DNA of 64,000 bases, taken from positions 496,001-560,000 of the forward strand of contig NIVC01001022.1 in NCBI GenBank assembly GCA_002269645.1. Reading direction: 5' to 3'. Made by a program: the position numbers and the translations under genes. Below, piece by piece: positions 3,233 to 55,115 of the stretch. The stretch comes from Macrostomum lignano. Lineage: Eukaryota. Within the stretch, counting starts at the first letter, position 1, and each line of letters starts with the position of its first letter. The notes under the pieces were generated by a model. That model had not been told where the DNA came from, did not search any database, and saw only the letters and a program-made list of their open reading frames with translations.

Positions 3233-4360
3233 AAATGGCACTTTGCCTATCAAAATGGCATTTTCACTATTAAAATGGCACTTTGACTATCAAAATGGCG
3301 CTCTGACTATCAAAATGGCACTTTTACTATCAAAATGGCACTTTGACTATCAAAATGGCGCTGACTATCAAAATGGCACTTTGACTATCAAAATGGCACT
3401 TTGACTATCAAAATGGCACTTTGACATTCAAAACGGCACTTGGACTATCAAAATGGCGCTTTGACTGTCAAAATGGCACTTTGACTATCAAAATGGCGCT
3501 CTGACTATCAAAATGGCGCTCTGACTATCAAAATGGCATTTTCACTATTAAAATGGAACTTTGACTATCAAAATGGCACTTTGACTATCAAAATGGCATT
3601 TTCACTAATAAAATGGCACTTTGACTATCAAAATGGCGCTCGGACTATCAAAATGGAACTTTGACATTCAAAGGGGCACTTTGACTATCAAAACGGCACT
3701 TTGACTATCAAAATGGCGCTTTGACTATCAAAATGGCGCTCTGACTATCAAAATGGCGCTTTGACTATCAAAATGGCACTTTGACTATCAAAATGGAACT
3801 TTGACTATCAAAATGGAACTTTGACTATCAAAATGGCGCTCTGACTATCAAAATGGCGCTCTGACTATCAAAATGGCACTTTTACTATCAAAATGGCACT
3901 TTGACTATCAAAATGGCGCTCTGACTATCAAAATGGCAGTTTCACCATTAAAATGGCACTTTGACTATCAAAATGGCATTTTCACTATTAAAATGGTACT
4001 TTGACTATCAAAATGGCACTTTGACATTCAAAGGGGCACTTTGACTATCAAAACGGCACTTTGACTATCAAAATGGCGCTTTGACTATCAAAATGGCGCT
4101 CTGACTATCAAAATGGCGCTTTGACTATCAAAATGGCACTTTGACTATCAAAATGGCGCTCTGACTATTAAAATGGCGCTCTGACTATCAAAATGGCACT
4201 TTGACTATCAAAATGGCGCTTTAACGATAAAAATGGCGCTTTGACAATCAAAATGGCACTTTGACTATCAAAATGCCGCTCTGACTATCAAAATGGCACT
4301 TTGACTTTCAAAACGGCACTTTGACTATCCAAATGGCTTTTAACTACCAAAATGGCACTT
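3233..4360. repeat. 20-bp minisatellite (AAAATGGCACTTTGACTATC), ~56 copies
   Basis: Direct reading; variant lines at 3661 and 4021 are identical (360-bp internal duplication). Confidence 0.97.
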
Positions 4361-4462
4361 CGCCTATTATATGACACTGGATCATAATAGCGTATTTTTA
4401 AAATAACATCAATGGTTAGATCATAAAACAGAAAAACATGTCACAAAGACACCAACACTCAC

Positions 4463-4774
4463 CTGGAGACCGAGTTTGCCAACATTGCTATGGGCAGCAG
4501 TCCGGATCGAAGAATAGATCACCAAGATAAGGAAGATTGCCAGACTGACACCTGTCTCCCAGTTAAATTGGGCAACCACAGAGTCCCCGGTAACGGGCGG
4601 AGCGGCCGTAGTTGTTGAACCACTAGACGAGGTTGGAGGAACCATCGTGTAGTTAACCATCTCCAGAGTGGGATTGCAGGCTTTCTCAGGCACAGAGGTG
4701 ACGGCGGACCAGGTCAGGTACATCACGTACAGGCTGATTAGGCCGCTCTGCAGGATGCCCGATCGCTGGTGGTC
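4463..4774 (-). CDS. SERINC: Serine incorporator (SERINC/TMS1) internal coding exon, phase 0-0
   Basis: Translates DHQRSGILQSGLISLYVMYLTWSAVTS...CNP...LAIFLILVIYSSIRTAAHSNVGKLGLQ, matching SERINC motifs SGLLQS..LY.MYLTWSA and YSSIRT. Acceptor ccgcAG at 4775-4776, donor GTGAGT at 4462. C-terminal exon(s) not found in the window. Confidence 0.9.
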
Positions 4775-4852
4775 CTGCGGACGGTGACGTCAATGAAAGA
4801 AAAGCTAAATTGTAGTTAAGCTTCTTAAAATTATTTTTATATAATCATGAGG

Positions 4853-6215: not shown

Positions 6216-6296
6216 TTCTTCAGCTTTAAGGCAAAGGAAGCTTAAGTTAAAACTAAAATAGTAAACTATAAAAAGATGCAAAATTCAACAACTGAC

Positions 6297-6650
6297 CTTT
6301 ATCATCAGGAGTGCAAAGAGCACAAAGAAGCAGGTCATGCCAAAGGCCACCCTGTACACGGCTCCATAGCCAATGACCAGGTAGCATTTGAATCCCGAAT
6401 AGATTTTGGTGTCAATCTGCCCAATCTGAGTGTCAATTTTGTAGTTGTCGCATAAAGCTGGTATTTTTTGCAGCGTTTTGTCTAGGTCAGGAATAAGCAT
6501 GATGCAGCACAGAGCGGCTCCTAATAGAAAAATCAAGGAGTACATAATTCTACTTGAGGTGCTGCTTTTGCACGAAGGCAAACAAGTGCAGCAAAGAGAA
6601 GCAGCTGAACTGCAGAAGCAGCAAGCAATGGCACTGATGCAGCAGCCCAT
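6297..6650 (-). CDS. SERINC: Serine incorporator first coding exon
   Basis: MGCCISAIACCFCSSAASLCCTCLPSCKSSTSSRIMYSLIFLLG...CIMLIP...GYGAVYRVAFGMTCFFVLFALLMIK is the Cys-rich SERINC N-terminus with the GY.AVYR motif. Donor GTCAGT at 6296, 118 codons. Confidence 0.93.
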
Positions 6651-9600
6651 TGTTTTCTTATGAAGATTCTTCTAATTTAGATCAGTAAGTATATGGATTT
6701 AAGAAATTTGTATTGTTTTGTTGATTCTCTTCAAGAGTCATGCATGAAAATATAAATATTATTAGTTAAGTTTTGCATTGCCTAAAAAACATTATAGGCC
6801 CAAATTTTCCGGATAGCAAATTAATTAATGGCTACTGTAACAAAAAAGATATTAAGTCAAATTGACATACCAAACTAACATGCTAAATGAGATACACATA
6901 GATTTACTTACTAGATACAGTTTTTAGAGGCAAAGGAATCTGTGCATTCTGGTGCAATGTACTTATAAGCATTAAACTTTCAGAAAATATTTGAATACTT
7001 GGTACTAGAAATTATGTGCACAAGTTTAAATAGCACAAAAATCCTGCATACACATTACATACAATGAGTCAATGACCATGGCATTGCATTGCAAAAGAAA
7101 ATTGTCTGGTCTGTACCACTGTAGACAAAAATGGCTGGTTGTAAGTGGACAGGTAAATGGCCAAAAAAGTATCTACTAGTGGCAGAATGTTATACACTTT
7201 TGTTCACTCATAGTCTACTTATAACTGGCCACTTCTTTTCTACTTACTTGTCTAATTTTCATTTACAATACATGTTAGTTGGACTTTAAAATCCTCACAA
7301 ACTGTCACATTATATCTGATTGAGTGAGATTTGGGCATGTAAAAATGTTTTATTAAGCAATGTCTGCTTTTATCATGAGCAACAAATGCAAAAATGCTGC
7401 AAGCAAAACAATATAGTTGAATTCAAAGAATCAATGGTTTGCTTGTTTTTGCATTTTTGGAGTCTTGAAATTCATTTTGTATTAGGTTTAAAAATTTTGC
7501 CTTAATGTATCATTTTTATATTTGACACAAATTTGTCTTATGTTATGGTCACTGATTCTATACATTTAAATTTTTACTAGAAATGCACACATTAAGTGCA
7601 CATCAAGTATTTGTAAGCATACATATAATATATCTAGGATTTTATACAAAAATTATATCCTACTCTAGAAACCAAATGCACAGGGCATTGTTAAGGTATC
7701 TATTAAATCAATTTAAAAAAACTAAAAAATAGATAGAAACAAATATTGCTTTTTGCTTGTGTCTACCTAAAAACACAAAAATCAAATATACACTGTTCAA
7801 AAGCACAAGAATTGTTTTATAGAGAAGCAATAAATTGTTAAAAGGTATATAATAAAATGGCATTTAATATTATAGCAGGTATATCTTGGACCTGTACCTT
7901 GGAGGGTGACCCCTTGGTAATTTTTGCTAGACCCTTAATGAGCATCTATGCATTTAAAAAAATTATTTCAATCATACATGCACAACCTTGGGAATCACTT
8001 GGCCACTTCTATTGGCAACACACACATGTAAGTTGCTATTGGCTGAGAGTAGTCACATGACTACTATTCCATCCAATAGTGACTTGCATAATGCAAAAGC
8101 ATTTGCAATGCAAATGCAAAAGCATAATTTATGGCACATGACCAAGATAGCCATACACCAAGATGGCCACAGATCTAAATATCTAAATTAAATAAAATAA
8201 TAATAAGTATAGGTCTATATATTTCATTCATTTCCATTTTCCTATTAGTAATAATTAGAAAGATAGATGCTAAAATAGAATTATATTACATTATAATCAT
8301 TCCCTTTGTTTTTAGGCCTAGCTTTTATTTTGGCTTGACCTATATATGTTTATTTACTAAATAAAGCAAGTAGCCAAGCATAAAATAAATACCTAGTTGC
8401 ATTTTTATCTCATTTTTGATAGCATTATTATTAGCAATGGTTTCTTAATAAACTAATAATATATTTAATATATATGGCCTTATGGGAATAAATTGGCACA
8501 GAAACTAAAAAGATTCATATTTTTATATTATGATTAATTGGTTTCAAATCTATTTATTGTATCAATATTTATAAATATGATTGATTAAAACAAAATATTG
8601 CATGACTATCAAACTATGATAATAAAACAATAGCTATTAAGTTGCTAATTATTGTTAGAGAGAAAGCAGATATAATAGAGATTTAATGTTGTGGCTATGG
8701 CCATCTTGGTGTGTGGCCATCTTGGTCTTACACCTAATTTATATATACTTTTTAGCTTTTACATTAACTAGGTTTATAAATATATTATTATCAAAACTTT
8801 ATGGCATATTTCAAAACTGTTTGTTTTTACTTGTTTTTTGCTATTTTGTTTTTATTGCTTGTTTTTTTTACAATTTGTTTGGTTGGTTATGATTAAAATT
8901 ATCATATTTATTATTTTTAATGCTTTTTTAATTTTAGAGTATTGCCTATTGCATTGGGCATTGCATACTATATTATGTCTACTTTGCTTTTTAAATGCAA
9001 AATGTATAGATAAATGACTGTTCATAAGCTTTTGTGTCTTAATTCTAGCCTACTGTAAAATAGTAGGCCTTTAGTAGGGCCTAATGCGAAGTTGCCTATA
9101 ATTTTATAAATGTATAAATGAGTGTAACAGACAAACTGCTACATAAAAATATAGTGCACTTAAAATTGTGTACCGTGAAGTTGCTTTCTTACCAAATATT
9201 TGGAATAAGCACTACACTTCCTTTAAAATTTCAGCTCATTTTATTTTTAGTTAGGCCTAGTGTTATATTATAGCATCGCAGATCAAGACTAAAAATATCA
9301 CCTAGGCAGCCCGCAGCTAGGCTATGCCTATATGTTTCTGCTTTTATGGTGCAGTAAACATAATGATGTTTTAAAAATAAGTACAAGAATGCAAGTGAAG
9401 CTACACAGAGGATAAAATTCAGCTATCATTTTGTAACAGTGACCCCAGTAGAGCCGTACAGTACAGTGCAATACAGGTAATACACTAAATACAGGTAACA
9501 GGACATGAATCATATTTCAGATTTGGAATGATTTTAAATTATTTTATTGTACACAAATATTAGAAAAACTTTTCTAACTAACTATCTAATTTTCTATTCT

Positions 9601-14682: not shown

Positions 14683-15453
14683 CTACACGCTAAACTTGAC
14701 CCAGTCGGCGCTCGTCTCGATCTCCGCCTCCACCTGAGCGTCGGTGAACAGCAGCAGGCGGCAGGCTCTCAGCTTGCTGTTGTACAGCACGTGTCTGCAG
14801 TTGCCTGAGTTGATGGCAGCCGCCATGCACTGCAGCGAGTTGGCCACCGGCTGCAGGTCAGAGTAGCAGTACTCAGTGCTGGCGTGGTAGCTGGTCTGCT
14901 TGAACCGAGTCAGCTTCCACGAGGCAGCAGTTGGCAGCGGCTGAGCGGCACTCGGAGTCCACTCGCAAGTGAATCCGAGTGAGCGAGAACAATAGAAATT
15001 TCCCATTTTTCCATAGGATAAATGCAGTACGCAGTTTTCTCCGGTTCCTCCGTTTGGCTCAGTTGAAGCACCCCACAGTGAGTCATTCAGCGGCATGACG
15101 CCGTTGCCGTTGACCAACTGCCAGCCCGATCGGCTCGAAGATCTCTCGTCAGCCAAGTCGGTCACTCCAAACCAGATGTGGCAGCTGCTGCAGGCGAAAC
15201 TGGGCATGCTGCTGAGCAGCTGCAGAGAGCTGTACGAGTTGAGCAGCTCGCCTCCGATCATGGCGCACTGCCGGTTGGCCTCGCACCAGCTGAAGCTCCT
15301 CACCTTGTTCACGAATATGCATTTTCCGGCTTCAAGGCTGAATGGCGAGGGGCACAGCTGGGCCAGGGCTGGCTGCTGCTGGCTGTCCAGAAAGGCGAGA
15401 AGGAACACCATGAGGGGCTTGGACTCCATGACAAGCCCACGCATAATAATCAC
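14683..15453 (-). CDS. Secreted C-type lectin domain + C-terminal PAN/apple-like domain protein (copy 1), intronless
   Basis: 256-aa ORF. Hydrophobic leader ending PALA/Q; CTLD motifs CP.PF...C...WCEA...C...GGEL...WFG.TD...W...EPNGG.GENC...C...F.CE; C-terminal Cys module CY..QC...NCRHVLYN....CRLL. TATAAAA at 15488-15494 upstream. Confidence 0.92.
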   Translation of the reverse strand: MIIMRGLVMESKPLMVFLLAFLDSQQQPALAQLCPSPFSLEAGKCIFVNKVRSFSWCEANRQCAMIGGELLNSYSSLQLLSSMPSFACSSCHIWFGVTDLADERSSSRSGWQLVNGNGVMPLNDSLWGASTEPNGGTGENCVLHLSYGKMGNFYCSRSLGFTCEWTPSAAQPLPTAASWKLTRFKQTSYHASTEYCYSDLQPVANSLQCMAAAINSGNCRHVLYNSKLRACRLLLFTDAQVEAEIETSADWVKFSV

Positions 15454-15591
15454 AGGCTGTAGCCAGATCTTTAATTCGCAGTCGGCTTTTTATACGTGTG
15501 TATGAGCTTTGTTATAAAAGGTTTTTGATGGTATTGTCTTAACTCTACTCTCATTAGACCTGCTAGGATTTGAAATCTTAGCAACGCTGCA

Positions 15592-16030
15592 CAGGGGCGG
15601 GATTTAGGCGGCGGGGCGGGGGACTGCCGCCCACCCCCGACCCATTGTGGCTGGCGGTGATGACGCCCCTGAATAAAGCCAATAGAGGTTCTCACGCCCT
15701 CGATTTGCTCAGAATGGCGCCCCTCTGTTGCGTATTATGGCGCCCCTCTATTGTGTATTATGGCGCCCCTCTATTGTGTATTATGGCGCCCCTCTATTGT
15801 GTATTATGGCGCCCCTCAATTGTGTATTATGGTGCCCCTCAATTGTGTATTATGGCGCCCCTCTATTATGTATTACTGGTATGGCGCCCCTCTATTGTGT
15901 ATTATGGCGCCCCTCTATTGTGTATTATGACGCCCCTCTATTGTGTATTATGGCGCCCCTCTATTGTGTATTATGGCGCCCCTCTATTGTGTATTATGGC
16001 GCCCCTCTATTGTGTATTATGACGCCCCTA
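15592..16030. repeat. 23-bp minisatellite (ATGGCGCCCCTCTATTGTGTATT, 15714-16030) next to CAGGGGCG/GACGCCCCTG TIR-like motifs
   Basis: About 13 copies. TIR-like motifs at 15592, 15662-15671 and 16021-16030; no TSD match. Confidence 0.85.
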
Positions 16031-16197
16031 TAGTCTTACCAACATTTGTTACAAGTATAATTATAAAGCTTACTTTCAGACTTTTCACGTTTGGCATAAA
16101 ATGTTATAATTTCAACAAAAAGCAAAGGAAAAAGAGGGAAGTTCTACCTGGCCTGGTGCGAGGCCAATGGCGCAAGATGATCGAATGTCGAGGGGAT

Positions 16198-16506
16198 GCT
16201 TTCACAAGCTTTCACAAGCTTTCACAAGCTTTCACAAGCTTTCACAAGCCTTCACAAGCTTTCACAAGCTTTCATAAGCCTTCACAAGCTTTCACAAGCT
16301 TTCACAAGCTTTCAAAAGCTTTCACGAGCTTTCACAAGCTTTCACAAGCTTTCATAAGCCTTCACAAGCTTTCACAAGCTTTCACGAGCTTTCACAAGCT
16401 TTCACAAGCTTTCATAAGCCTTCACAAGCTTTCACAAGCTTTCATATGCCTTCACAAGCTTTCACAAGCTTTCATAAGCCTTCACAAGCTTTCACAAGCT
16501 TTCACA
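16198..16506. repeat. 10-bp tandem repeat (TTCACAAGCT), ~31 copies
   Basis: Direct reading; inverted unit CTTGTGAA at ~16587. Confidence 0.96.
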
Positions 16507-16821
16507 ACATCGAAAAGCAAATTATTTCACTAGGTAAAAATTTGAAATGTCGAAAACTTAAATTAAGCTACTAAAGAAATTTCGAGCTTGTGAAGGAAGG
16601 TGCCATCGACGTAGTGAAAAATTTCGATTTCGTGAAACCCCCTCCCCATGTCGAGCTGTCAAACTCGAATAACTATCTCGCCTGTAGTGACTGTGATGTG
16701 TTTAACTCGAAGTTAGCGGTGTGGTCTGATTTGGTTTGACTGACATCTGAATTTGTGTCGCTAATATAGTAGCTACTTGCATAGCTCGTATCGCTTTTTT
16801 GTAAACTTAGATCTGGTCGAA

Positions 16822-17192
16822 CAGAGAGTGCTAGCCAGAGAGTGCTAGCCAGAGAGTGCTAGTCAGAGAGTGCTAGCCAGAGAGTGCTAGCCAGAGAGTG
16901 CTAGCCAGAGAGTGCTAGCCAGAGAATGCTAGCCAGAGAATGCTTGCCAGAGAATGCTTGCCAGAGAATGCTAGCCAGAGAATGCTTGCCAGAGAATGCT
17001 AGCCAGAGAATGCTTGCCAGAGAATGCTTGCCAGAGAATGCTAGCCAGAGAATGCTTGCCAGAGAATGCTTGCCAGAGAATGCTTGTCAGAGAATGCTTG
17101 CCAGAGAATGCTTGCCAGAGAATGCTAGCCAGAGAATGCTTGCCAGAGAATGCTAGCCAGAGAATGCTTGCCAGAGAATGCTAACCAGAGAA
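16822..17192. repeat. 14-bp tandem repeat (CCAGAGA[G/A]TGCT[A/T]G), ~26 copies
   Basis: Direct reading; G-variant block followed by A-variant block. Confidence 0.96.
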
Positions 17193-17899
17193 TTTTATTG
17201 TTGAAAAAGGAAAAAATGAAAACTTCTGTGCTGAAAAAATGAAAAGGCTGTGAAGACTGCATGACGACTGTTTTTTCGGAAAGATTCGCTTCAAGTCTGT
17301 TGACAAACATTTTATGTTTTAACTGCAATTTTTTAGTTCAGTCCTACCCCATAATCTATAGGAAAGCAAATAGCTTAGCATTTCTGTGCGCTTTATCTTG
17401 GGCTTTGTCGGTCGCAATTCGGAGATCAAAGAAATGCTATTTACGATTTAAATGGATCGTAAAATCTTGTTTTATTTGCTTTAAAATACATTTCAACGAA
17501 TTTCTCCGCTTGGAGAAGAATCTGATTCGACTTCAATATTACAATGGTACTAAATATATACAATTAAAATGTGTTGAAAGAACCCGAATAAAATTTGATA
17601 GCTAATGATGTTTAAAGTATTTAATGTGCTTCTGATGCTACTTCCACAAATTTCGAAAGTAGCATCATAACAAATCTTCAGAGTCAAATGCTGAAAGCAG
17701 GACAAAGCATTTTTCTCCACCGTGAACCAGGGGCTACCTTTCTCTTGCTTTCGGGAGTTTCCAGACTCGTCTGCTTTAGTAGAGACAAATTTTGCCAAGT
17801 CAGATAAGAAAGCTACATGTTAGATGATAGTAAGATGATAGATGTCTAAAAAGGATAAAAGGAGTTGAACGCATTTTTGCTAGCCCGCAAAAGCTGAGC

Positions 17900-18700
17900 A
17901 AAAGCAAGGACAACTTAAGTAGAAGAACGCAACACTCGAAATCTACGGTAAATGTTTTAAAGGCAACTTTTCGCCGAAAAGTTTTGTTATTAAAACCACC
18001 TCTGTGACGAATCTCCCCAAGGAAGTGTTCCAGCGTAAAGGGTACGTCAAGAGGTACTTAAAGCAAGCGGACGGCTGATAGAAAATATGCTGAAGTATCA
18101 GCTTCAGGGCTGTGATATTGTTGCAATATCCTATTACAGACCATGTTTTTCGCCGACTCTCAATCAGCGGTACCTCATTAATCGTTTAGAGGCTGCGAAT
18201 GTAGTCGCGCGCCTCATCGAGAAGCGCGAATGTGGTCTAAAGGCTTGCTTGCTTGCGACTTCCAAATGGGACCTTTCCAGCCTGAGTCCTGCAAAAAACG
18301 GATGCAAGTTTAAGGGCCATGATTGCGCGTCTTTATGCTATTTTGGTTTAATATACCGGCTCCCCTCGAGTTGAAGATGTCGAACAGATCATCAATGCAA
18401 TAAACCGGACCGTTTAATCACAATTTTGGAAATCCGAAACTCCAAGCTGCTTTTGGAAGGTGAGAGCGTCAGCGACGGACGAACTGATTGTCTGTGCAGC
18501 CAAGCAGACCTTCATCTTTTGTCGCTGCCACAATTCAATGCATTTCTTTTAGAGCCGATTTCCGATTCGAACCCCCTCAGCTTCTTGCAGATTGTGCAAT
18601 AGTTCCAGATAGTGCCAGCCAGGTTAGCGGTGTCCTGAGCGAAACGGTTGCAGCTGATTCAAATGAGCCTTTTGAAGTGCTACTCCTATTCTGGTTCTTG
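17900..18700 (-). mobile_element. Decayed P-element/THAP9-like transposase
   Basis: Motifs in the expected order across stops and frameshifts: WHYLELLHNLQEAEG; WQRQKMKVCLAAQTISSSVADALTF; DDLFDIFNSR; LLDEARDYIRSL; FKYLLTY; LEHFLGEIRHRGGFNN. These match the P-superfamily motifs QKMKV.LAAQ..S.SVA, LFD..NSR and YLLTY..SQD.LE..F..IR..GG.N. Confidence 0.85.
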
Positions 18701-19111
18701 ATGATGTTCCTAGAAATAGAACCCGCTGCTCCTGAAGTAGCTAGATAGCACCGTTGTACTACCTATCGATTTGCCTGAAAATGAACCTAAAACGTTAGCC
18801 TTGACTTGGTAGGGTTGCTGCCACCTTAGTGTGCGGACTCGACGCGTCGGCAGAGTTGTCTATCCGTCACATGAAATAAAATAACGAAGTCGCTCGGAGC
18901 AAAGGCAAATCTGAAAATGTCTCGACAGTCGATCGTCTTAGTAGAATGCTGCTCGAACCTGAAAACCTGTAAACCTGAAATGAGAGAGGATAGCTCGGAG
19001 GACGCTTCTCGAGTCAGCCACGATGCTCCGCGAGACGACTCGGTCTGGGCTGCGACGCGATGGTCCGCGCTGCTCCACGAAGTCTGGAGAAAATGGCTCG
19101 CAGATGCTCCG

Positions 19112-19474
19112 TATTTATAGCCGAGCAGACCCCCAAAAGTCACGTGAGTTTCATGCGGTGAGCGCGTGAAACTTCCTTATTTGGTCACTAAAATCATGCG
19201 AGCGACGCGTGATTCAAGGCCAACTTCCAAACAAGGCAACCCTGTCACGCAGCAGTGGCGTGACCCAAGGTCAGTGGCCACGCACAGCATGCGTGCACAG
19301 TCACGTGCTTTTCTGTGCTAAAAATAGAACTTGGGCGGATGAGTCATCCTGTTTACTCCATCTAGGCAGCCATTACACTCCGCGCAGGTGATGAGTCATC
19401 CTGCTACGCCTCGCAGCGCGAGTGGGAAGACATTGAGTGTGGCTGCCCACGCCTGCTCAGGCGATGAGTCATCG
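19112..19474 (-). promoter_or_regulatory. Candidate TATA promoter/enhancer with three AP-1 palindromes and two E-boxes
   Basis: TATAAATA on minus strand (19112-19119); GTCACGTGA at 19139-19147; CACGTG at 19302; GATGAGTCATC at 19338, 19390 and 19463. Confidence 0.5.
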
Positions 19475-21589
19475 GGCAGTAAACACTTAGGCCCAGCACA
19501 GGGTATCTCTCTCACTAGATCAGGTGGACTGAGCTACTGTGCAGCGGACCACAGCACTCTGAGGGAAAGCTAGCGAATGCTGCTGAATAACCAGTTAGCA
19601 GCCAGTCACTCCACTTTCTAAATTGCTCTGGTCCAACCTTGATTATTGCTGTGTTGGATCCTTTCGGACAGACAAGGTGTCCAAGAACATACAACCTTTG
19701 TTTTCAACAGTGGTTTGTCTACCAATAGTTCAACTGGGGATGCAATTTACCTTTGCCAACGGTTCGTAAAATAACAGGTATCAATCAATGACACATTGTG
19801 TCAGACTGAAAAGGGTTGAATGAACCCGTGTAATATTTGATATTTAAAATTAAATAATTAAATATGCTACTGCATACAAAAATTTCGAAAGTAGCACAAT
19901 AATATTGTTTTAAAGTATTTTAAATTCGTAGCTAGTACTTCAGCACGGATAGAGCTTAATACACATTTAACTCGCATATCTTGCAAAGCTGAAATATTCG
20001 AGATTAGTCGCTTCAATAAATAAATAAATAATTTAACTTAATAAATAGGAAGTCAAAGAATAAAAACGCTCTAGGAGCGTATTGTCACTGTACTTCTTAA
20101 TTAATGAGGAACTGCCTAGTGGCTGAGGCATGCTACTGCAGTGGCGGTCTACTGGAAATAGTCATTGCACTAATTTGCATTAGAGTAAGTTTGAAATAGA
20201 CAATCGGGCGTTAAATGTCATTAACTGCCCGCTAATTTGCATTAAAGTAAGTTTAAGGCATTAAAGTCCTGCAAGCGGGCTTAAATGTAGTCTATGGCAT
20301 TAAAAGGCAAGAATAAGTGCCCAGCGGGCACAAAGGTCATGGTACAATAAAGGTAAAAGTCTGGCTCAGCTCACCCATAGGTAAAAAACAAAGGCTTCTT
20401 TAGGCGCTTGCTTATACTATACACAAATATACGATTGTACATGTGTAAAATTACTCATAACTCACAAGTAATACATGTAGATTCGAATGATCTAAGAGGC
20501 AAGAAGCAAGTAAGAGGCCAGCATAGAATGGAATAATTATTTTAATAAACTACATGTAGCTACCCCTACATGTAGGCCCCCGTAAGCCTTGGCATCTCAG
20601 CAATTACCCCCTGTAAGCCTTGTCATTTCAGCATTCCCCCGTAAGCCTTGACATCACAGCATCTTGACTTCCTGGAAAAAAGTATACCCAAAAAGTATAG
20701 AAATTTTTGTTTTCTCCACAAGCCATACGTGGCCTGGTCTGTATACCAGCAGTTGACACCTACGCAGAATACAGAAATGTAGAAACATGTGTGCAAATTT
20801 CTGTAAGATTCATTTTTCCCATCTGAACTTAGGTTACGTGGTCAGTGTTTGAGCGATGTTCAGATCCGGTTGTGAAACTCAAATAAGATATCTATATGTA
20901 GCAGCTCTATTTGTGAGAGTTTGCCTCCGGAATCGGGCAAACATTATCTTGTGCAACTGCAAGCTCTGATATATTTAACACCGAACCACCAAACGGGGTT
21001 AACTAGAAGTTTGCTCTGCACTTTCAGTTTTTAGTGGATGATTCTGTTAAATCGGTCTTTTACTTGATTATTCACTCTTCATCCTGTAAGGGCTTGATAT
21101 TCTGCTATGGTCTCTGATATTTCGTATATTCCTGTTCTCTGACTAAATCGACGTCTTCAATAGTTACATGGATTCGTTGCCTGAAATACACTGGTACACC
21201 TAGCGAAATGCTATGGCTCATGAGGGGAAAGGCTGAGACGTCAAGACTCATGAGGGGATTGCTGAAATGCTGTGGCTCATAAGGGGGGGTTGCTGAGGTG
21301 CCAATGGTTCACTGGAAGCTGTTGGTAATGAACAAGCATCAAAGAGTGAGTTAAGGTTAAGCTATAACTTAAAGACAGTTTTTAGTGCTAAAGCTCAAAG
21401 GGATGCTGATATCTTAGGCTTTTTGGGCTTTTGCTTTTTTGCGTTAAACATCATATTTGTCTAAAGAAATAAACAATAGGGACTGTACAAGATCAAAAGC
21501 TACAAGTAGTTAATTAATAAAATATTTATTTCTCTGTTGTCGAACAAACCGGGGACGCAGATGCTTCTGTTTGATAATAGTAATAATCA

Positions 21590-21890
21590 TAATTGGTACA
21601 CCTGCTCTAATTGGGCCAGATGTGCAACCGACAGCTCATCCACAGCTATTGCGCAGCGCATCTGAAGGCTGCGTACGGCTGTTCAGTCCAAGGACTGGGG
21701 GTCGCCACGCACACCCTCAATTACCCCAGCTAATGCTGGCACCCATTTTACAGCTGGCTGAACTGAAGCAATGCAGAGTTAAGTGTCTTGCTCAAGGACA
21801 CAAATTGTTCCAGTGGGATCAGGAATCGAACCCCCAACCTTCAAGTCGTGCGTCCGACGCTCTAACCACTAGGCTGCAACCCCTTTCTTG
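21590..21890 (-). mobile_element. tRNA-derived SINE with CORE-like central domain (copy A)
   Basis: Reverse complement shows A-box TAGTGGTTAGAGC, B-box GGTTCGATTCC and CORE-like TGTGTCCTTGAGCAAGACACTTAAC...CTGTAAAATGGG; homologous to the copies at 29386 and 30276. Confidence 0.9.
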
Positions 21891-23246
21891 TGTTTGCTAA
21901 CAAGTATTTGCTAAACAATTTTCATTGATCCCTCTTCTTGTCTCATTCACACAAGCCTTTTGCCACTGTCATAAACCTCTAGACCAGTCCGAACTACTCG
22001 AAGATCTTTTTCATTTTTTTTCCTACTGAGTTTCTACCGTAACCTTTAGTAGGTTGATCAAGCCTCGTTCAAAGATCAGATGGAGCTTTCTGCCGATAGT
22101 CAGTCAGGGCGGCTGTATGAGCTCAGGAGTCAGCGGAATGGGAAGAATTGACGTAGCACTGGTTATGGGATCGGGATGGTTTCGGCAGATGCAACCCTTC
22201 CACTTGAATTGTGAGGGATGTCTGTCCCGTGGAGCGAATTTTCAAACGCAGCAGAGATCTTTATCTTCTTCAACTTCTCAGTATACTGCATATGCATTGA
22301 ATCTCGGTGCGCACTTGCGAGATTTGGGCCAGGGAGGCTCTCTTTTCCCTCATCGTTCTCTGCTGCACTTCTACGGACCACAAGCTTGCCTACAAGGAAC
22401 TACTTCCTACTGCCATTGTTCTAACCAGACTCCAGTGCATAAGCTCACAGCACTGTTGTTTACTAAAGCCACTTCACTTGCGGCTTCAGCTGAAGCATTA
22501 ATAAATCATTGAGCTCACACGCAAACCAGCCTGTTTGAGAAAACTCCTGTTTAAAGTGTAAGGGTCTAAAGGCAATTAAAAACTTTGCCATCGTTGTCCG
22601 TCACCAGGCCTTTTCTTGCCTTCTTGCCAACTGCATAGACTTTTTACTAAAAGGAGTTTTAGTACATTGTAAAGGAATAATTGAAGGCCGTTAACTAAAG
22701 CCGAAAAGCATCCTGGACGTGTGGGCGTTGCAAGAACAGAGAAAGGAAAGTTGAGAACTGACGTTCTTAAAGCTTAGGATCGTTTACTGATGTATGCTGA
22801 AACTTTTGCTGAGTGAACCAATGATTCTGCAGATAAAATAAAACGAATATAGTTTAGAATGCATGGAAGACACTTGTAAACGTTTGAATGCAGCGCAAGT
22901 ATTTTAATGACTGACAGTCTATTAAAGGTATAATTTCCTCCACATCGATGCGACCCTGGTTATCACGGTCTGTCATTTTAAGTAATTCTTAAGAAAAAGC
23001 AAAAAGCGGCGCTCGGGTCTCAATGATAGATGAATGATAGAAAATCACCTTTGTATATTGCTCGAAGAAAAAAGCAAAAAAAGAAGAAAACGAGTATACT
23101 TTTGAATAGTTTTTCCGTGTATATAGCTTAGGATTCGAAGGTTGTATTACAGATAACAAGTTTGCGTTTTTAGTTTTTATCGTTTCTCAGGATTAAAGTA
23201 ATATTTCTTCGATATGATATCGGCATCAACTGACATCACGCAATTC

Positions 23247-23984
23247 TCAATACACGCTGAACTTGACCCAGTCGGCGCTCGTCTCGATCTCCGCCTCCAC
23301 CTGAGCGTCGGTGAACAGCAGCAGGCGGCAGGCTCTCAGCTTGCTGTTGTACAGCACGTGTCTGCAGTTGCCAGAATTGAAAGCTGACATGACACAAGCC
23401 AGCTCGGAGTGAACATTGGTCAGGTCAGAGTAGCAGTACTCAGTGCTGGCATGGTAGCTGGTCCGCTTGAACGGAGTAAGTTCAAAATTCAGATGCGTCT
23501 GAGAAGTCCTCGGCTTCCACTCGCAAGCAAATCCGAGTGAGCGAGGACAAAAGTAGTTTCCGATTTTTCCATGCGACAAATGTATTACGCAGTTTTCGCC
23601 GGTGCCTCCGTTTGGCTCAGTTGAAGCACCCCACAGTGAGTTATCTAGCGGCATGACGCCGTTGTCTTTGACCATCAGCCAGCCCGATCGGCTCGAAGAC
23701 CTCTCATCAGCCAAGTCGGTCACTCCAAACCAGATGTGGCAGCTGCTGCAGGCGAAACTCGGCATGCTGCTGAGCAGCTGCAGAGAGCTGTACGAGTTGA
23801 GCAGCTCGCCTCCGATCATGGCGCACTGCCGGTTGGCCTCGCACCAGCTGACTCTGTTCACCTTGTTCACGAATATGCATTTTCCCGCCTCAAGGCTGAA
23901 CGGCGCGGGGCACAGCTGGGCCAGGGCTGGCAGCAACTGGTGGCTGATAATTCCTTGAAGAAGGAGCACGAAATTAAATTTCAT
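23247..23984 (-). CDS. Secreted C-type lectin + PAN/apple-like protein (copy 2), intronless
   Basis: The first in-frame ATG at 23984 gives MKFNFVLLLQGIISHQLLPALAQ (signal-like), 245 aa; the track's TTG start at 24068 is unlikely. Same motifs as copy 1. Confidence 0.92.
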   Translation of the reverse strand: MKFNFVLLLQGIISHQLLPALAQLCPAPFSLEAGKCIFVNKVNRVSWCEANRQCAMIGGELLNSYSSLQLLSSMPSFACSSCHIWFGVTDLADERSSSRSGWLMVKDNGVMPLDNSLWGASTEPNGGTGENCVIHLSHGKIGNYFCPRSLGFACEWKPRTSQTHLNFELTPFKRTSYHASTEYCYSDLTNVHSELACVMSAFNSGNCRHVLYNSKLRACRLLLFTDAQVEAEIETSADWVKFSVY

Positions 23985-26046
23985 GATTTTAACAGAATTA
24001 TTGTTTGTTTTTGTGAGTATTACTCTCAGACTCAAGGTTAATAGTATCTTAGATTTAATTTCGAACAATGCCGAAATTTCTGATCATGTTTCCTCCGCAA
24101 AAAATCCTATATATGTTTCAGCAACCAGTAGTTCGCTGTGAGCCGTGTCGTGCTCCCATTGGTCAAAAGGCAAGTATGAAGGATTGAGCTGAATCTACAA
24201 ACGGATGGCTCAGACTTTTGGTAACCTTTTGGGCTGAAGTATTTACGAGTTACCGCTATTTGCTATTTCAATGAATTATAGAGATATTCAATAGGCTTCT
24301 CAACTACGAAATAAGGACCTACTCACCGCCCACCAGTTCTGGTAATCAATCTATGGCGTAATATGAGACCTTGAAGAAAACCATTCTCCACGACTCGAGA
24401 TCTTTTCACGAAAATTATTTAGAATCTTACTTTTTTATCAAAGCGAGTTATTGGTGTCATGTTGACGATGAATAATATGAATTTGTTTTAAACTGTGGAA
24501 AACTTCAATCTATCAGATGGACGGGTGTAGTCTGCTATCTGTATCTGAATCGGTACGACGTTTCCAATTCACCGATTTCAGAGGGCAAGCGTAATAACTT
24601 ATTGACTTTTGCAGCGTTAGCAGTTTTATATATTTTTCGTTGCTAGCTAGCTGGGTTGTAAAATCCAGTTTATTTTGATTCTGTTGTTGGCTTGCAGCAC
24701 GGAATCTTCGTAGTTTATCCTTATGTACGGTTAGCTGCTGTAACACCATTAAGATTGTTCGAAATGAAGTTCGGTGGGGTCTCAGTTCAAGATCTGGAAT
24801 CGAAAAGGTTGCATTTTTATCAAAACTGTTAGACTATCGGATAGACATTAAATGTGCGTGTGATTAGCTAAATAAATTGTTTGTAGGTTACCTGGTTATT
24901 TAAACACCAGAGGTATCAATCCTCTCATACCGATACAGTCATAATTCGATCATCATGCTCGAGTGGGAGATTTTGTAAGAACAAGTCAGTAGCTGTCTCG
25001 ATCTAGTCCAAACTTAAATTCGAAAGTATAGAGTTCAATCAAACATTGCTTTTTCTATTTTAGCTTTGACACTTCGGGGTTAGTTCGGGTTTCGGATTCG
25101 AAATCTCTGGAAGATCTTCGAGATCGGGGTTAAACTAGTTCTCTCAACTATCGTTATTAATCCCTAATATATAGTCAAAAGCAGGGGCGTCGCCACCGGG
25201 GGGACAGGGGGACATGTCCATCTATGTTATGTCTTGCCACCCTACCTTGTGTCCCGTAGTGGGAATAAAAAATTTTGTTTCAGGGCGCCAAAATCTGAGT
25301 GGATTCCTACGGCCGCTCGACGTCAGCGAGACCCACTAATTGTAAGGTCGCCACAACGTCGGGCGACGTCCACCCCTGACGCGAATAAGAAGAATAGCAG
25401 AAAGACATCACACTACTGAAATAGTATAGTTGTTTATTAATGACTCCAAACCATTTTCCGAAGCATGTAATGTTTTAGTATTAACAAGCACGAAGTTATC
25501 TGTTTCCAATATTAATTTTAAGTGGCCATTTGTATTTTTCCATAATATCTTCTTTTTCTCATACATGTAGCTATTGCTTTTCGAATATACTTTACATTGT
25601 TCTCCGAAATTTTCCCATAGTTAACCCCCAGATTTTATAAGTCATGCCAAATATTATACATAAAACTATCATGGTGAATAAGTGATCAAGTGAGCAATTG
25701 AGCAAGAGCACTGATTCAGAGATTCGAGGTCGGAAATCCCTGTCAATGTCATCATCAGTTTTGGAACTTCAGTTTCTGATAAATAAAGGTAAATATCAAC
25801 ATGAAGTATTATTTGAGTTGCCGATGCATTTCGTCCATTTTCATTAGGACATCGTCAGGGTCTTTTGATTGAGAAACAATTTGAACAAATATTTAGTATA
25901 TATAGATAGTTGAGAGTAACAAGAGTAGTTGAATTGAGTTTTTAATTGATGGTTTAAAACTTGTACATAGTAATCAATTTTTGATACAGTATTGGTTGGG
26001 TAAAGTGCATATCAGTTTCAAGCCAGTCCGGTCATTGACAAATCAG

Positions 26047-26628
26047 CTAAAAAATTCTGAGTTGACGGCTAGCCCCACCCATCGCAAGTTGGTTATTTAA
26101 CGTGGGCTGTTTGGTCTTAATGTACAGGGCTTCTAATAGGCAGAGAATGTGATCTCTATTACAAAAATCAATAGCCTTAATCATTTCGTGTGGTTCAGCC
26201 TCACAACAAGAATTGCAGGTTAGCAGGTGTTCGTTAATAGCAGAGTTTTTTAGCCAGTGCTCTCTGACCCTCGTGTATAAGTGTCGTTTAGTTTTTCCTA
26301 TGTAGGAGATGCTCTGGTCCTCAGAGCAAACAAATTTATACACGACACCAGCCGCGAGAGAACGTGGAACACTGGATTTCAACTTGCAGACGAACTTAGC
26401 AATCTTTTCGGTGCGAAACACAACACGGATTTGAGTGTTTAAGTCTTTACGGAGCAGCTTTTCTAACTTCTTTTTAAACTCTATAGAACAAACACCAAAG
26501 TAAGGCAAAGTGATCAAGGGACATTCAGAGGTGGAATCACGAACTTTCATCCGAGTAGGTTCAGTCAGTTTGTCATTGAGAAAAGAGTTGACAATTTTCA
26601 TCACAAAGTTCTTAGGATAACCATTGTT
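26047..26628 (-). mobile_element. 5'-truncated Penelope-like element: open frame with NGYP motif and GIY-YIG endonuclease
   Basis: NNGYPKNFVMK...TLPYFG...GVVYKFVCSEDQSISYIGKTKRHLYTRVREH...EALYIK...PTLN; characteristic PLE C-terminus. Confidence 0.92.
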
Positions 26629-26740
26629 AACCTCAGACTCGAAGTTTCTGAGTCTTCGTTCGAGCTGCTGATGAAGAATTCGCTCCTCTTCTTTGAGGTC
26701 TTCCTCTTCTTGGCCCTACGTTCGATGTCTGTGGGGCTGT

Positions 26741-26903
26741 GGGGTCAAAATGAGTGCCTGCGGCGCCAAAATGAGTGCCTGCGGTGCCAAAATGAGTGCA
26801 TTCGGCGCCAAAATGAGTGCCTGCGGTGCCAAAATGAGTGCATTCGGCGCCAGAATGAGTGCCTGCGGTGCCAAAATGAGTGCATTCGGCGCCAGAATGA
26901 GTG
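26741..26903. repeat. 21-bp repeat (GGCGCCAAAATGAGTGCCTGC) in alternating 42-bp dimers
   Basis: Direct reading; same unit as the array at 59440-60495. Confidence 0.95.
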
Positions 26904-27520
26904 GTAACAACACTGATTCTCAATGTACATTTAGGAATTTAGTAATGTACATGTGGAATCCTTGGCTTCTTCCCACAATAAATACATGGCGACGCCCCTG
27001 GCTAAAAGCACAGCGCTTGGTGACTGCAGCTTGGCTGCAGCCAGTCACAGCCAAAGACACCAAATTTTGAGGGAAACTCAAAAGAAACCAAAGCTGAAGT
27101 TCAGAAAATTACTTTGCATCAAACATGAAATATCATGTCGACAAATTTTATTTAGCATTCAGTTGGTTTTATTAATCACTAGCTCATTTTCAGCTTTCTA
27201 AAACTTATTAATAGATTTAGAAATTTTGAGTCTAACTCTATATGAGGAATAAACAGCGCTGTACCAAAAATCGACCTGAAGAAAATCAGTAGGACCCTAA
27301 GGATTTTAATTATTGCCCATTCAAAGCGGTTCATGGAAAACAGTGTACATTTCGATAATATGAATTCATCAACTTTTACTTTTTTTCGTTTCTATTCTGT
27401 CATTAATACGTTAACTATGAATTTAACAAAATAGGCTGCTTCTTTACAAAAAAAATTCAAAAGTTTGCTAAACCTCCGTACACTACTTATTGGTTAAGTG
27501 ACTTCACCATCTAAAATTGC

Positions 27521-28264
27521 TCAAAACACGCTGAACTTGACCCAGTCGGCGCTCGTCTCGATCTCGGCCTCCACCTGAGCGTCGGTGAACAGCAGCAGGC
27601 GGCAGGCTCTCAGCTTGCTGTTGTACAGCACGTGTCTGCAGTTGCCAGAATTGAAAGCTGACATGACACAAGCCAGCTCGGAGTGAACATTGGTCAGGTC
27701 AGAGTAGCAGTACTCAGTGCTGGCATGGTAGCTGGTTCGCTTGAACGGAATCTGCTTCCACTTAATTGGCGACGAGACAGCACTTGAACTGAACTCACAG
27801 ACGAAGCCACGGGGAATTGAGCACGGGTTGTTTCCCAGCTTGCCTGCGCCACTCCCAGCAGTCTGAAGCATGCAGTTCTCAAAAACTCCCATATTCGGCT
27901 CAGTGAGTGCTTCCCAGATGGAGTCATTCAGCGGAACAATGTCATTGCTGTTGATTCTCTGCCAGCCGGATCTGCTCGAGCCTCTCTCATCGGCCAAGTC
28001 GGTCACTCCAAGCCACAGGCGGCAGTCGCATTTCATGCTCGGCATGCTTCCAAGCAGGTGCAGAGAGCTGTACGAGTTGAGCAGCTCGCCTCCGATCATG
28101 GCGCACTGCCGGTTGGCCTCGCACCAGCTGAAGCTCTGAGCGGTGTTAACGAACACGCACTTGCCGGCCTCGAGGTTGAACGGGGCTGGGCACTGGGCCC
28201 ACACCGACAGCAGCTGGGCGCTCAAGGTGCTAATAAACAAAATTAACCTCAGTTCAGATCCCAT
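27521..28264 (-). CDS. Secreted C-type lectin + PAN/apple-like protein (copy 3), intronless
   Basis: 247-aa ORF; leader MGSELRLILFISTLSAQLLSVWA/Q; EPNMG motif; C-terminal 74 aa nearly identical to copy 2. Confidence 0.93.
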   Translation of the reverse strand: MGSELRLILFISTLSAQLLSVWAQCPAPFNLEAGKCVFVNTAQSFSWCEANRQCAMIGGELLNSYSSLHLLGSMPSMKCDCRLWLGVTDLADERGSSRSGWQRINSNDIVPLNDSIWEALTEPNMGVFENCMLQTAGSGAGKLGNNPCSIPRGFVCEFSSSAVSSPIKWKQIPFKRTSYHASTEYCYSDLTNVHSELACVMSAFNSGNCRHVLYNSKLRACRLLLFTDAQVEAEIETSADWVKFSVF

Positions 28265-29098: not shown

Positions 29099-32496
<3,398 letters not shown>

Positions 32497-42122: not shown

Positions 42123-43814
42123 TTTCTCTCGCATTGCCTGCCTGCTTTCATGCATCCCGATTCGTCCCATTAGTCGGCCTTTAACTGCCAAAGATTCTTC
42201 TTTAAGTTCACCATCCCTGCTTTCGAAGAAGAAAGAAGAATCCCTGGGAGTCGGCGCGGAAAAAAGATCGAAATTGATTTTTTCAGGAGTTGGCCGCTGC
42301 CCTGGGGTTTGGGGGGATCGACTCAAGGGATGAGCGTGCACGGAGCTAAGAGCTATTATCTGAGGTACTATTACGGGTGAAGCATTAGCTCTAGAGGACT
42401 GCACAGGATATCTATTAAAGTCTCACCCTCGGAGACGTTTGACAGGTCATCTTCATTGGAGTCTGCACCGCTGGGCCTCGCATGAAAGTATTGTGACCGC
42501 CGATTCCACCTCTGCCGCAGGTGAGTGTGACGTGCTCCATGGGCAGGTAGTCCGACCTGTGATGCTGCGACATCTCTGGGTAGGGCCTGTACAGATGCTG
42601 CAAAGTTTTGAAAGTTTTTCGGGAGTTAATGTGAAATCAAATAAACGACTCAAAGTTTGAGAACAGGTCAGGTGAGATCATGGAAAGGACAGTCCAAAAA
42701 AGTAGATCAACCGCATCTAACTACTCATAATTTTTAAAGCTCTAATAAAGTACCCTCTGATTAATTAATTAAGACCCCCAAAGAAATTCAGAATAAAGAA
42801 TTATTGAACAATGAAATGCAACTGGAAGTTTTTCGTGATTGAAGGACAGCTAATTCAGTCCATCAAGCTGTGCAGGCAGGAAGCGAGCGACCCCCCCCCC
42901 GCTGACTTGGAGCGGTTGAGGGGAGCAACTTCTTTTTCTGTGGGGGAGTGGGGGTCCTGATGGACGCGGCGTCTCATTTGAGCTGGGCTCTACTGCCGCC
43001 TAAATCTGGTTCTGGAGGTAGTTTTTTTCTCCCAGTCTCGATTATTCTTTTCTTCCCTTACTGCATCGCGCGCAGCGGAGGCTGATGTGTGTCCTTCAAA
43101 AATTGTGCGATTTTTTGCTGCCGTATTGAAAAAACCATTTCCCTCCTCTGTATACTTGCCAGTCCTTTACGGTTCACCTGACTCAAAATTGTAACCTCAG
43201 TTTCGGGTGAAGCCGGGACTCGGGTGGGGGGGGGGAGCGTTTGAGGACTCTCCGAGGCGGTCGTCCGTTGGGTGCACCGGGTTCTGAATGCTCCCAGACC
43301 CCTCCCTGTGAATGCCGGTACATCTTTGAAACGTTGAACAGCTGGGGCATGCCGTGCGCCGGAGAGAAAGACGGTCCCTGAGCTACTTGACCATGAAAGA
43401 CCATTTCTAAGCCTGCGGTCGGGGTTGGTCGATTTTTTTAAGTTGACCCTCCTAAAAAACCTCCCAACAATGCCTTTTCTGCAGCGTTTCTCAAGCGGAA
43501 GTTTTGCCTCCCATCCTTTGGAGAGGAGCTTCCGACTCTGCATGCGCCAGGGTCTACTCTAACCTGAGCACCCAGCGCTCGCCTGACTAAGTGCTTGTGT
43601 GCTGAATAGCGTCAAACCTTAGAGCCGCAGTCACTCTATTTACGCTGTGTGCTCTTCCGAATAAGTCTTTTATGCTCAGTTGCTACAAAGCCAATTTAAA
43701 TGGTTAGTCTCCGCACGTCTCTACTTCCGTGTTCCCACTAGTCTCATTCTCTACCCTATTAATAACCTCACTGTCTTCTGCATCTCCCTCTGTCTACCTT
43801 CTGAATTCTTAGTC

Positions 43815-44885
43815 TATCTCCCTTCCCTAGCTACTTCTCTACCTACCTTCCCTAGCTACTTTTCTAACTTCCCTAACTACTTCTCTAACTACCTTTCCTA
43901 GCTACTTCTCTACCTACCATTCCTAGCTACCTCTTCATCTCCCTAGCTACTTCTCTACCTACCTATCCTAGCTACTTCTCTAACTTCCCTAGCTACTTCT
44001 CTACCTACCTTTCCTAGCTACTTCTCTACTTACCTTTCCTAGCTACTTGATCTACCTACCTTCCTAGCTACCTCTTCATCTCCCTAGCTAGCTACTTCTC
44101 TACCTACCTACTTAGCTACTTCTCTACCTACCTTCCTAGCTACTTCTCTAACTTCCCTAACTACTTCTCTAACTACCTTTCCTAGCTACTTCTCTACCTA
44201 CCTTCCTAGCTATTTCTCTAACTTCCCTAACTACTTCTCTACCTACCTTTCCTAGCTACTTCTCTAACTTCCCTAGCTACTTCTCTACCTACCTTTCCTA
44301 GCTACTTCTCTACCTACCATTCCTAGCTACCTCTTCATCTCCCTAGCTAGCTACTTCTCTACCTACCTTTCCTAGCTACTTCTCTAACTTCCCTAGCTAC
44401 TTCTCTACCTACCTTTCCTAGCTACTTTTCTACTTACCTTTCCTAGCTACTTGATCTACCTACCTTCCTAGCTACCTCTTCATCTCCCTAGCTAGCTACT
44501 TCTCTACCTACCTACTTAGCTACTTCTCTACCTACCTTCCTAGCTACTTCTCTAACTTCCAAAATACTTCTCTAACTACCTTTCCTAGCTACTTCTCTAC
44601 CTACCTTCCTAGCTATTTCTCTAACTTCCCTAACTACTTCTCTACCTACCTTTCCTAGCTACTTCTCTAACTTCCCTAGCTACTTCTCTACCTACCATTC
44701 CTAGCTACCTCTTCATCTCCCTAGCTAGCTACTTCTCTACCTACCTTTCCTAGCTACTTCTCTAACTTCCCTAGCTACTTCTCTATCTACCTTTCCTAGC
44801 TACTTGATCTACCTACCTTCCTGGCTACCTCTTCATCTCCCTAGCTAGCTACTTCTCTACCTACCTTCCGAGCTACTTCTCTACT
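43815..44885. repeat. Compound pyrimidine-rich satellite (CTAGCTACTTCTCTACCTACCTTTC and variants)
   Basis: Direct reading; ~404-bp higher-order duplication (44047 versus 44451). Confidence 0.93.
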
Positions 44886-49697: not shown

Positions 49698-50484
<787 letters not shown>

Positions 50485-54161: not shown

Positions 54162-55115
54162 CGTCCATAAAATTTCGAATGTCTGTCAGGTTCCTAATCA
54201 AATTGCCACAATCTTTGTCGAATAATAAATAGCCTGAAAATAATTCTAGTCACTAATTGCCGTTACACCTAATCAATCAGTTGAGTATTTTTGGCTTCAC
54301 TCCAGACTGACCTGCAAAATTGAGCAGATTTGTCCGCGACCTCGCATAAATTTTGCTCAGTCCGCAGTTGAAGCGAGAGCTCAATAAAGTCTGATATGTT
54401 TTTCTGGCCTGCCCATTTTCAGCCTAAAAAATGTGAAAATAAAAAAATTCGCGAAAGACCTCTCGACACTCTCAGATGCAAATGCTACGCGGGAAGAAAC
54501 GTCTCAATAGAAAGTGGAGACGGAGGAAGAGGCAAGCAGGAGAGGCGATTCGAAATTTCTTTGCTTTGCTCGGTTGTTTTAGGCTGGCTGGGTTGGTGGG
54601 GCCGAAGGGGAGGAAGGAAGGAATTAATTAAATCAGGTGCACAGGCGTGACAAATCCTGACTCAAAACACGCCAGAGCCATACAGCTCAGGCTTTCCCTC
54701 TCTCTCTTTTCACTTCAACCCTCAAGGCCCTGTCCCGGGTGTTAAGTTGAGTTTGAGTTGCCCAGCGCCCTATCCGAGTAGCCGCATGGCTTTTTTAGCA
54801 AGGCTGAATACTCGCCAGGGGTCGAGGCTGGATGTGAGGCGGAGCTGCAACTCGAGCTCGCCAGAGACCTCACGCTGGCCCTGAAGTGGACTGAAAATTA
54901 ATGTACAGCACGAACTTCTGCTTCTAAGCCAAGCTTCGAAGCCGCTCTGGAGGGTACTCGGGGGCTGTTCAGAGTCGCCGGAATATGCCGGACCTCCCAC
55001 TGCTTAATTAGCAAAGTCACGCAGAACAAACACGGCCTTTCAGCTGTATGGGTGTTAATAATTACCACTCATTCCGGTTCCTGCCCCTCCCTGTCTACCG
55101 GCCCGGCTGTCTCAC

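Follow-up and report, generated by a model that had tools for sequence, protein, structure and literature searches.

What would make three neighbouring genes agree almost letter for letter in some stretches and barely resemble each other in the next? The question is raised by a stretch of Macrostomum lignano DNA of 64,000 nucleotides (nt), which we call the window (assembly GCA_002269645.1, contig NIVC01001022.1, positions 496,001 to 560,000 of the forward strand). Three lectin-like genes lie on its minus strand, together within 14 kb: copy 1 (c1, 14683–15429, 248 amino acids (aa) from MESK), copy 2 (c2, 23247–23984, 245 aa), and copy 3 (c3, 27521–28264, 247 aa), in the coding-strand order c3, c2, c1. 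All three open reading frames (ORFs) are intact and share one orientation, and a tblastn search found these three copies alone in the 64 kb. The proteins, ~245 aa long, each consist of a hydrophobic N-terminal signal peptide, a C-type lectin domain (CTLD), and a PAN-like C-terminal domain; c2 is a chimeric copy, while c3 has the most divergent CTLD of the three. An earlier reading of this DNA from its letters alone (the sequence-only reading) had described three intronless lectin genes. The intact ORFs, together with matches to Pfam Lectin_C and to the family profile, agree with that description. Because one unbroken ORF covers the full length of family members from elsewhere, the coding sequences (CDSs) are taken as single-exon. 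We find that the three genes are mosaics of one another, probably as a result of concerted evolution, in which recurrent short-tract interlocus gene conversion in the germ line has acted on old tandem paralogs.

Over the whole CDS, identity is 85% for c1 and c2, 72.5% for c1 and c3, and 76% for c2 and c3. The sequence-only reading had counted 3 mismatches in 173 nt between c1 and c2 (15121–15293 vs 23679–23851) and 2 in 224 nt between c2 and c3 (23252–23475 vs 27526–27749), and both figures were exact on recount. A 73-nt block that it had described as identical in all three copies is indeed so, with a mismatch bounding it on each side, and a further 113-nt block (14693–14805) differs at 0–1 positions from 23260–23372 and 27534–27646. 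The divergent patches it had placed between these blocks (signal peptide, CTLD half, linker) are borne out by the segment-wise synonymous divergence (dS) given below. The longest identical runs are 113 nt (c1 and c2), 80 nt (c1 and c3), and 170 nt (c2 and c3), against maxima of 83, 46, and 54 nt in 20,000 column permutations per pair. When the comparison was restricted to degenerate codons encoding the same amino acid, the c2–c3 run of 55 identical codons was reached in none of 20,000 permutations, and the c1–c3 run of 26 codons had p = 0.009. The relationship of the copies also changes along the gene, with a topology switch located in c2 at ~23496–23498 (maximum chi-square 84.0 vs a null maximum of 19.7 in 10,000 permutations). 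Upstream of the switch, 118 sites group c1 with c2 and 19 group c2 with c3; downstream, the counts are 5 and 38.

Copy 2 accordingly resembles c1 between codons ~19 and ~160, is identical to c3 over the stretch that starts at codon ~178 and runs to the stop, and has a signal peptide, linker, and flanks of its own. The tract that we read as recent covers 23247–23477 of c2 and 27521–27751 of c3 (minus strand); its 5' limit is the copy-specific linker and its 3' limit the stop codon. The tract that we read as older covers 23517–23931 of c2 and 14959–15373 of c1 (minus strand), which encode the mature N-terminus and the whole CTLD. Two blocks are common to all copies, both on the minus strand. The 73-nt block (15221–15293, 23779–23851, and 28059–28131) encodes SWCEANRQCAMIGGELLNSYSSL, a CTLD helix-1 motif found family-wide, and has a GC content at third codon positions (GC3) of 0.92. 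The C-terminal block of 120 nt (14686–14805, 23250–23372, and 27524–27646) has 1–2 mismatches and encodes GNCRHVLYNSKLRACRLLLFTDAQVEAEIETSADWVKF, the PAN-like core. Directly next to it on the minus strand lies an island specific to c1 (14806–14856), encoding LQPVANSLQCMAAAINS, in which 27 of 51 nt differ from c2 and c3. The counterparts of the island in c2 (23373–23423) and c3 (27647–27697) are identical to each other, and the sequence on both sides of it is nearly identical among the copies. The linker between CTLD and PAN-like domain (c1 14911–14958, c2 23478–23516, c3 27752–27790; minus strand) is distinct in each copy, carries indels, and is where the c2/c3 tract ends on its 5' side. The signal-peptide region (c1 15358–15429, c2 23916–23984, c3 28193–28264; minus strand) diverges in all three copies and marks the 5' limit of detectable homology.

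Synonymous divergence follows the same patchwork. We estimated dS and its nonsynonymous counterpart dN by segment with the method of Nei and Gojobori (NG86), whose estimates are unreliable where dS is saturated. Between c1 and c2, dS is 0.70 in the signal peptide, 0–0.25 across the mature N-terminus and CTLD, and 1.49 in the linker, after which it falls to 0.10 in codons 178–195, climbs to 1.33 in a 17-codon patch (196–212), and drops to 0.04 in the last 40 codons. The c2–c3 pair has a dS of ~0.9–1.0 in the signal peptide and linker, is saturated in codons 25–45 and 104–160, and has values of 0.60 in codons 71–103 and 0 in the block at codons 46–70. From codon 178 to the stop, the c2–c3 values are 0–0.10 by segment and ~0.03–0.04 overall. 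A single gene pair thus spans dS values from 0 to above 1.3. The sequence-only reading had proposed that gene conversion or recombination made mosaics of these genes, with dS along the gene as a check and one topology with uniform dS as the contrary outcome. Since topology and dS both change along the gene, one topology with uniform dS does not describe these copies, and the proposal of exchange is borne out.

The homology is confined to the coding sequence. Outside the CDSs, blastn at word size 9 found no flank similarity among the three copies, and the c2/c3 match stops ~5 nt past the stop codon, so that the claim of similarity halting at the stop codons between unrelated flanks holds apart from this short overrun. 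These boundaries bear on the possibility that c2 is a hybrid gene formed by unequal crossing-over between c1 and c3. The gene order c3–c2–c1 and the polarity of the chimera, c1-like at its 5' end and c3-like at its 3' end, are what such a crossover would give. However, the flanks, signal peptide, and linker of c2 match neither parent, and its 3' flank would be expected to be ~98% identical to that of c3, yet similarity ends ~5 nt after the stop. The two halves of c2 also differ in age, with dS of ~0.15–0.2 in one and ~0.03 in the other. We consider a crossover origin very unlikely and rejected it on the unrelated flanks and the private signal peptide and linker. Because similarity ends at the stop codon and the signal peptide, with no flank homology, tract-limited conversion is favoured over crossover.

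Could selection on the protein account for the identical blocks on its own? If very strong purifying selection were aided by codon bias or by a low mutation rate, the blocks would need no exchange, and the pattern of c2 would come from unequal rates. The blocks do coincide with the family-wide motifs WC.A...C...GGEL and C.L.LFTDA...W.KF, and the C-terminal peptide from CRHV to WVKF is identical in P0002, a separate M. lignano protein described below. As an outgroup we used L001, a homolog on a 967-bp metagenome contig with 62% identity, from which the 73-nt block differs at 14 of 73 nt and the 120-nt block at 12–13 of 120. Outside the blocks, c1 is about as far from c3 (170 of 483 nt) as from L001 (186 of 483). 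Inside them, c1 and c3 differ at 2 of 81 and 2 of 120 nt, whereas c1 and L001 differ at 16 of 81 and 13 of 120. Within the blocks the window copies thus appear to have been homogenised, being 5–8 times too similar relative to L001, beyond what slow evolution would give (Fisher p = 0.003 and 0.008, modest values for blocks picked after inspection of the data). Constraint also does not explain the topology switch along the gene, or how 27 differences in 51 nt can adjoin ~120 nt with one difference. The c1 version of that island differs from L001 at 20 of 51 positions and the c2/c3 version at 30. RNA-level constraint was rejected as well: folding z-scores for both blocks, in the window copies and L001, lie between -0.35 and +0.92, no Rfam match was found anywhere in the window, and neither an RNA structure nor an Rfam element accounts for the conservation at nucleotide level. 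Constraint without exchange is, in our judgement, highly improbable.

The choice of blocks after inspection is one of several points that weigh against gene conversion as the explanation. The blocks evolve slowly at synonymous sites even against L001 (dS 0.3–0.5, compared with ~0.7 to saturation in other segments) and their GC3 is above 0.9, so part of their identity may come from constraint or codon bias. The comparison base consists of three copies and one outgroup, and this outgroup, being a metagenome contig, could be a paralog from the same species. In the permutation test on degenerate codons, the c1–c2 run of 36 identical codons was not significant (p = 0.12). Timing and direction of the proposed events are drawn from one genome sequence and should be read as provisional.

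An assembly or polishing artefact would also count against conversion, as paralog reads mixed during consensus building or short-read polishing may produce identical blocks. The blocks are short (73–230 nt), the genome is extremely repeat-rich, and exact matches to the proteins of c1 (with two alternative starts), c2, and c3 were absent from the other assemblies on record, which leaves the blocks without independent confirmation. Every shared tract, however, sits in copy-specific sequence on both sides, and the three ORFs are all intact. The c1/c2 tract is similar, not identical (dS ~0.2), a graded divergence unlike an artefact, and the block edges match biological boundaries (stop codon, linker, signal peptide). 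We regard an artefact as unlikely.

Gene conversion between old paralogs remains the probable explanation. The duplications appear old because neither the flanks nor the signal peptides can be aligned, and because the loop half of the CTLD, the linker, and the patch at codons 196–212 have reached saturation in dS. The paralog lineages appear old for another reason, namely that c3, L001, and M. lignano proteins have in common a one-codon deletion and several residues against c1 and c2. Conversion over other kinds of exchange, a germ-line setting, and the following order of events are what we infer. After the duplications, short-tract ectopic conversion would repeatedly have copied sequence between neighbouring lectin genes. 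An older event between c1 and c2 would have covered the mature N-terminus and CTLD, a very recent one between c2 and c3 would have run from codon ~178 to the stop, and the tracts shared three ways would be the helix-1 block of 73 nt and the final ~120 nt. Because conversion would require near-identical DNA to start and extend, it would recur in the stretches most conserved by protein-level selection. Tracts would halt at heterologous sequence: the indel-bearing linker, the signal peptide, and the 3' flank. Stretches under weaker constraint would either drift past the homology threshold or be kept different by selection, leaving islands specific to each copy. GC3 is 0.90–0.93 in the shared blocks and ~0.5 in the variable half of the CTLD; a high GC3 in converted blocks fits GC-biased conversion, and codon bias at conserved residues looks alike.

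The sequence-only reading had gone further, suggesting that variable cassettes are shuffled between constant anchors as a form of immune diversification. A dedicated system of this kind, by germ-line cassette shuffling or somatic conversion, would make a repertoire of lectins, and the locus has some of its features: tandem secreted lectins, variation focused in the ligand-binding half, and evident exchange. Against it, the exchanges that are visible homogenise the copies, and the three genes show a single clear reassortment, c2. The supposed anchors are motifs conserved in M. lignano, L001, and the wider family of ~240-aa proteins, while the supposed variable cassettes are the least constrained parts of the gene (signal peptide, CTLD loop half, linker). 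Searches of the window with the three genes masked (blastn-short and tblastn) gave chance matches only, with no partial or pseudogene donor cassettes or gene fragments. No shared repeat brackets the genes; the tandem arrays near them have unrelated units and occur throughout the window. Nor was positive selection detected in the variable patches, for which the sequence-only reading had proposed a dN/dS test: dN/dS in the variable segments is 0.3–0.7, although saturation limits the power of the test, and the sole value above 1 is 1.4 in the c2–c3 linker (13 codons), on about 9 synonymous sites. A genome sequence, moreover, holds no somatic information. Because the events homogenise, the anchors are conserved, the patches are the least constrained parts, donors and bracketing repeats are absent from the window, and only one reassortment is seen, the shuffling claim is unsupported, and we give a dedicated system the slimmest chance of the explanations considered.

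The domain assignments were examined at the level of sequence, profile, and fold. Pfam Lectin_C is matched by c1 (23.5 bits) and c2 (23.3 bits) above the cut-off of 22.6 and by c3 (22.4 bits) slightly under it; 12 of 14 family members match, with a best E of 1e-11. A family profile searched against the PDB matched MRC2 and DC-SIGN at E of about 1e-7. An AlphaFold2 model built on a 14-sequence alignment reached a predicted local distance difference test (pLDDT) of 69 and a predicted template modelling score (pTM) of 0.66, a moderate confidence that is adequate for the CTLD only; a model from a 5-sequence alignment was discarded (pLDDT 43). With the first model, Foldseek retrieved Endo180, CD23, mincle, and SRCL from the PDB at probability 1.00, with target-normalised TM-scores of 0.6–0.72 over ~135–140 columns. 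The CTLD is of the long form and carries the EPN motif in c1, c2, c3, and L001, and the WND position, the second Ca2+/sugar motif, is not intact (GNF in c1, GNY in c2, GNN in c3). A lectin function of c1–c3 is what we infer from their sequences. The vertebrate CTLDs (Endo180/MRC2, DC-SIGN, CD23, mincle) have the fold, the conserved cysteines, and EPN in common with c1–c3 at ~20% sequence identity, but c1–c3 lack an intact WND and are small soluble proteins in which the CTLD is joined to a PAN-like domain. That second domain is weakly recognised in the window, where c1 alone among the copies matches Pfam PAN_1 (16.4 bits, under the 21.4 cut-off). Of the 14 family members, 9 match PAN_1 (best E 1.8e-5), and four conserved cysteines of a PAN/apple-like domain align across the family.

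A profile search returned 666 representative proteins at E <= 1e-3, and unnamed full-length proteins of ~240 aa with the same architecture are numerous among these. The closest named relatives are M. lignano proteins with about 50% identity, P0002 (UniRef A0A1I8..., 236 aa, signal peptide-CTLD-PAN) and P0123 (UniRef A0A1I8JSG6, in which the C-terminal part is a CTLD-PAN lectin). Both have the layout of c1–c3 with 50% identity overall, and are separate genes whose function is uncharacterised; the C-terminal CRHVLYNSKLRACRLLLFTDAQVEAEIETSADWVKF of P0002 is identical to that of the window copies. P0123 is a 738-aa model annotated as 'sodium/solute symporter' that ends in a CTLD-PAN lectin of this family, and looks like a fused gene model. 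Word-indexed protein searches for further close relatives returned only P0001, P0002, and a weak match annotated as globin, and two metagenome scans for such relatives returned nothing; P0002 has no contig on record. In L001, an in-frame stop within positions 1–260 lies just upstream of a signal-peptide-like stretch and the nearest ATGs are out of frame, which points to a frameshift, a pseudogene, or an indel introduced by assembly.

Several other features of the window were recorded. Long antisense ORFs overlap each lectin gene on the plus strand (15095–15505, 23602–23958, and 27870–28139) and have their simplest explanation in GC3-rich codon usage; their conservation mirrors the sense strand. 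A Serinc (serine incorporator) gene has exons at 4424–4789 and 6288–6671 (both minus; Pfam E = 5e-17 and 5e-24) that match different parts of the Pfam profile. Because this gene is split into exons, the neighbouring genes are intron-bearing, unlike the lectin CDSs. A protocadherin-like gene (55095–57928, minus) consists of two long ORFs (589 and 352 aa) and encodes several cadherin repeats, one transmembrane segment, and a tail rich in Q; its best database relatives are only 24–34% identical and come from many phyla, so that public protein sets seem to cover this genome poorly. Between c2 and c3, an ORF with a GIY-YIG nuclease domain (26047–26604, minus; extended frame 26050–26715; Pfam E = 3e-7 to 5e-7) adjoins a 21/42-nt minisatellite (26746–26903) and is probably the remnant of a Penelope-like retroelement.

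Mini- and microsatellites are very dense throughout the window, with about 20 arrays of Tandem Repeats Finder score >=150 in 64 kb, among them 3233–4360, 31448–32146, 43813–44884, 49698–50483, 52828–54165, 59442–60499, and 62146–63683. The 21-nt unit GGCGCCAAAATGAGTGCCTGC is common to the arrays at 26746–26903 and 59442–60499. A dispersed repeat of ~250–310 nt with 90–92% identity occurs at 21574–21883, 30277–30586, and 29429–29671 (the matches to the first copy being inverted), so that oppositely oriented copies lie on the two sides of c2 and c3; ORFs that cross the repeat match no Pfam family. Upstream of c1, between two minisatellites, 15 nt at 16153–16167 (plus) match the shared CTLD block exactly in inverted orientation; the match reaches no further and is no better than chance.

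On the present evidence, the locus is a case of ordinary concerted evolution. It illustrates cleanly, and on a small scale, how conversion limited by homology can combine with protein constraint to yield 'constant anchors, variable patches', a pattern easily mistaken for a designed cassette system. The locus also draws attention to an uncharacterised and widespread family of ~240-aa signal peptide-CTLD-PAN-like proteins, with a C-terminal motif that Macrostomum-like flatworms conserve to an extreme degree. Should a larger family or somatic variants be found, the locus would become relevant to the evolution of invertebrate immune repertoires. There is a small chance that c1–c3 belong to a large genome-wide CTLD-PAN family in which frequent short-tract conversion, with invariant blocks as its anchors, would be kept because it brings ligand-binding and PAN-patch variants into new combinations and so yields new lectin specificities, possibly with a somatic component. 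If that were true, the family would be a flatworm counterpart of the repertoire diversification seen in the two invertebrate systems compared next, the fibrinogen-related proteins (FREPs) of Biomphalaria glabrata and the Sp185/333 genes of the sea urchin.

For the FREPs, somatic diversification by point mutation and gene conversion has been reported, on the basis that somatic variants outnumber germ-line genes. Like c1–c3, these are invertebrate secreted lectin-type proteins with conversion invoked among their members. Their architecture is immunoglobulin superfamily (IgSF) plus fibrinogen, as opposed to CTLD plus PAN, and c1–c3 are known from one genome sequence. The Sp185/333 (SpTransformer) genes lie between short tandem repeats and segmental duplications that they have in common, and one gene differs from another by the presence or absence of elements. 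The flanks of c1–c3, in contrast, are unrelated, with no shared bracketing repeat, and the proteins are colinear and encoded by three copies. The two loci are alike in that both hold small, clustered genes for secreted proteins with mosaic elements in a repeat-rich region (PMC5103432). Conversion between paralogs is known to yield mosaics of high and low divergence in the GOT1 paralogs of Tigriopus californicus (PMC3728101), and the same kind of mosaic is described for Caenorhabditis paralogs (PMC3966223) and in the HMA4 tandem-paralog model (bioRxiv 10.1101/2025.10.29.685298). Our genes differ from these in encoding CTLD-PAN lectins, in their flatworm host, and in a homology that lies strictly inside a single-exon CDS. 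In these three sets of paralogs, as in c1–c3, nearby copies combine near-identical and divergent segments with heterogeneous dS, and conversion is favoured where identity is high while divergent islands persist.

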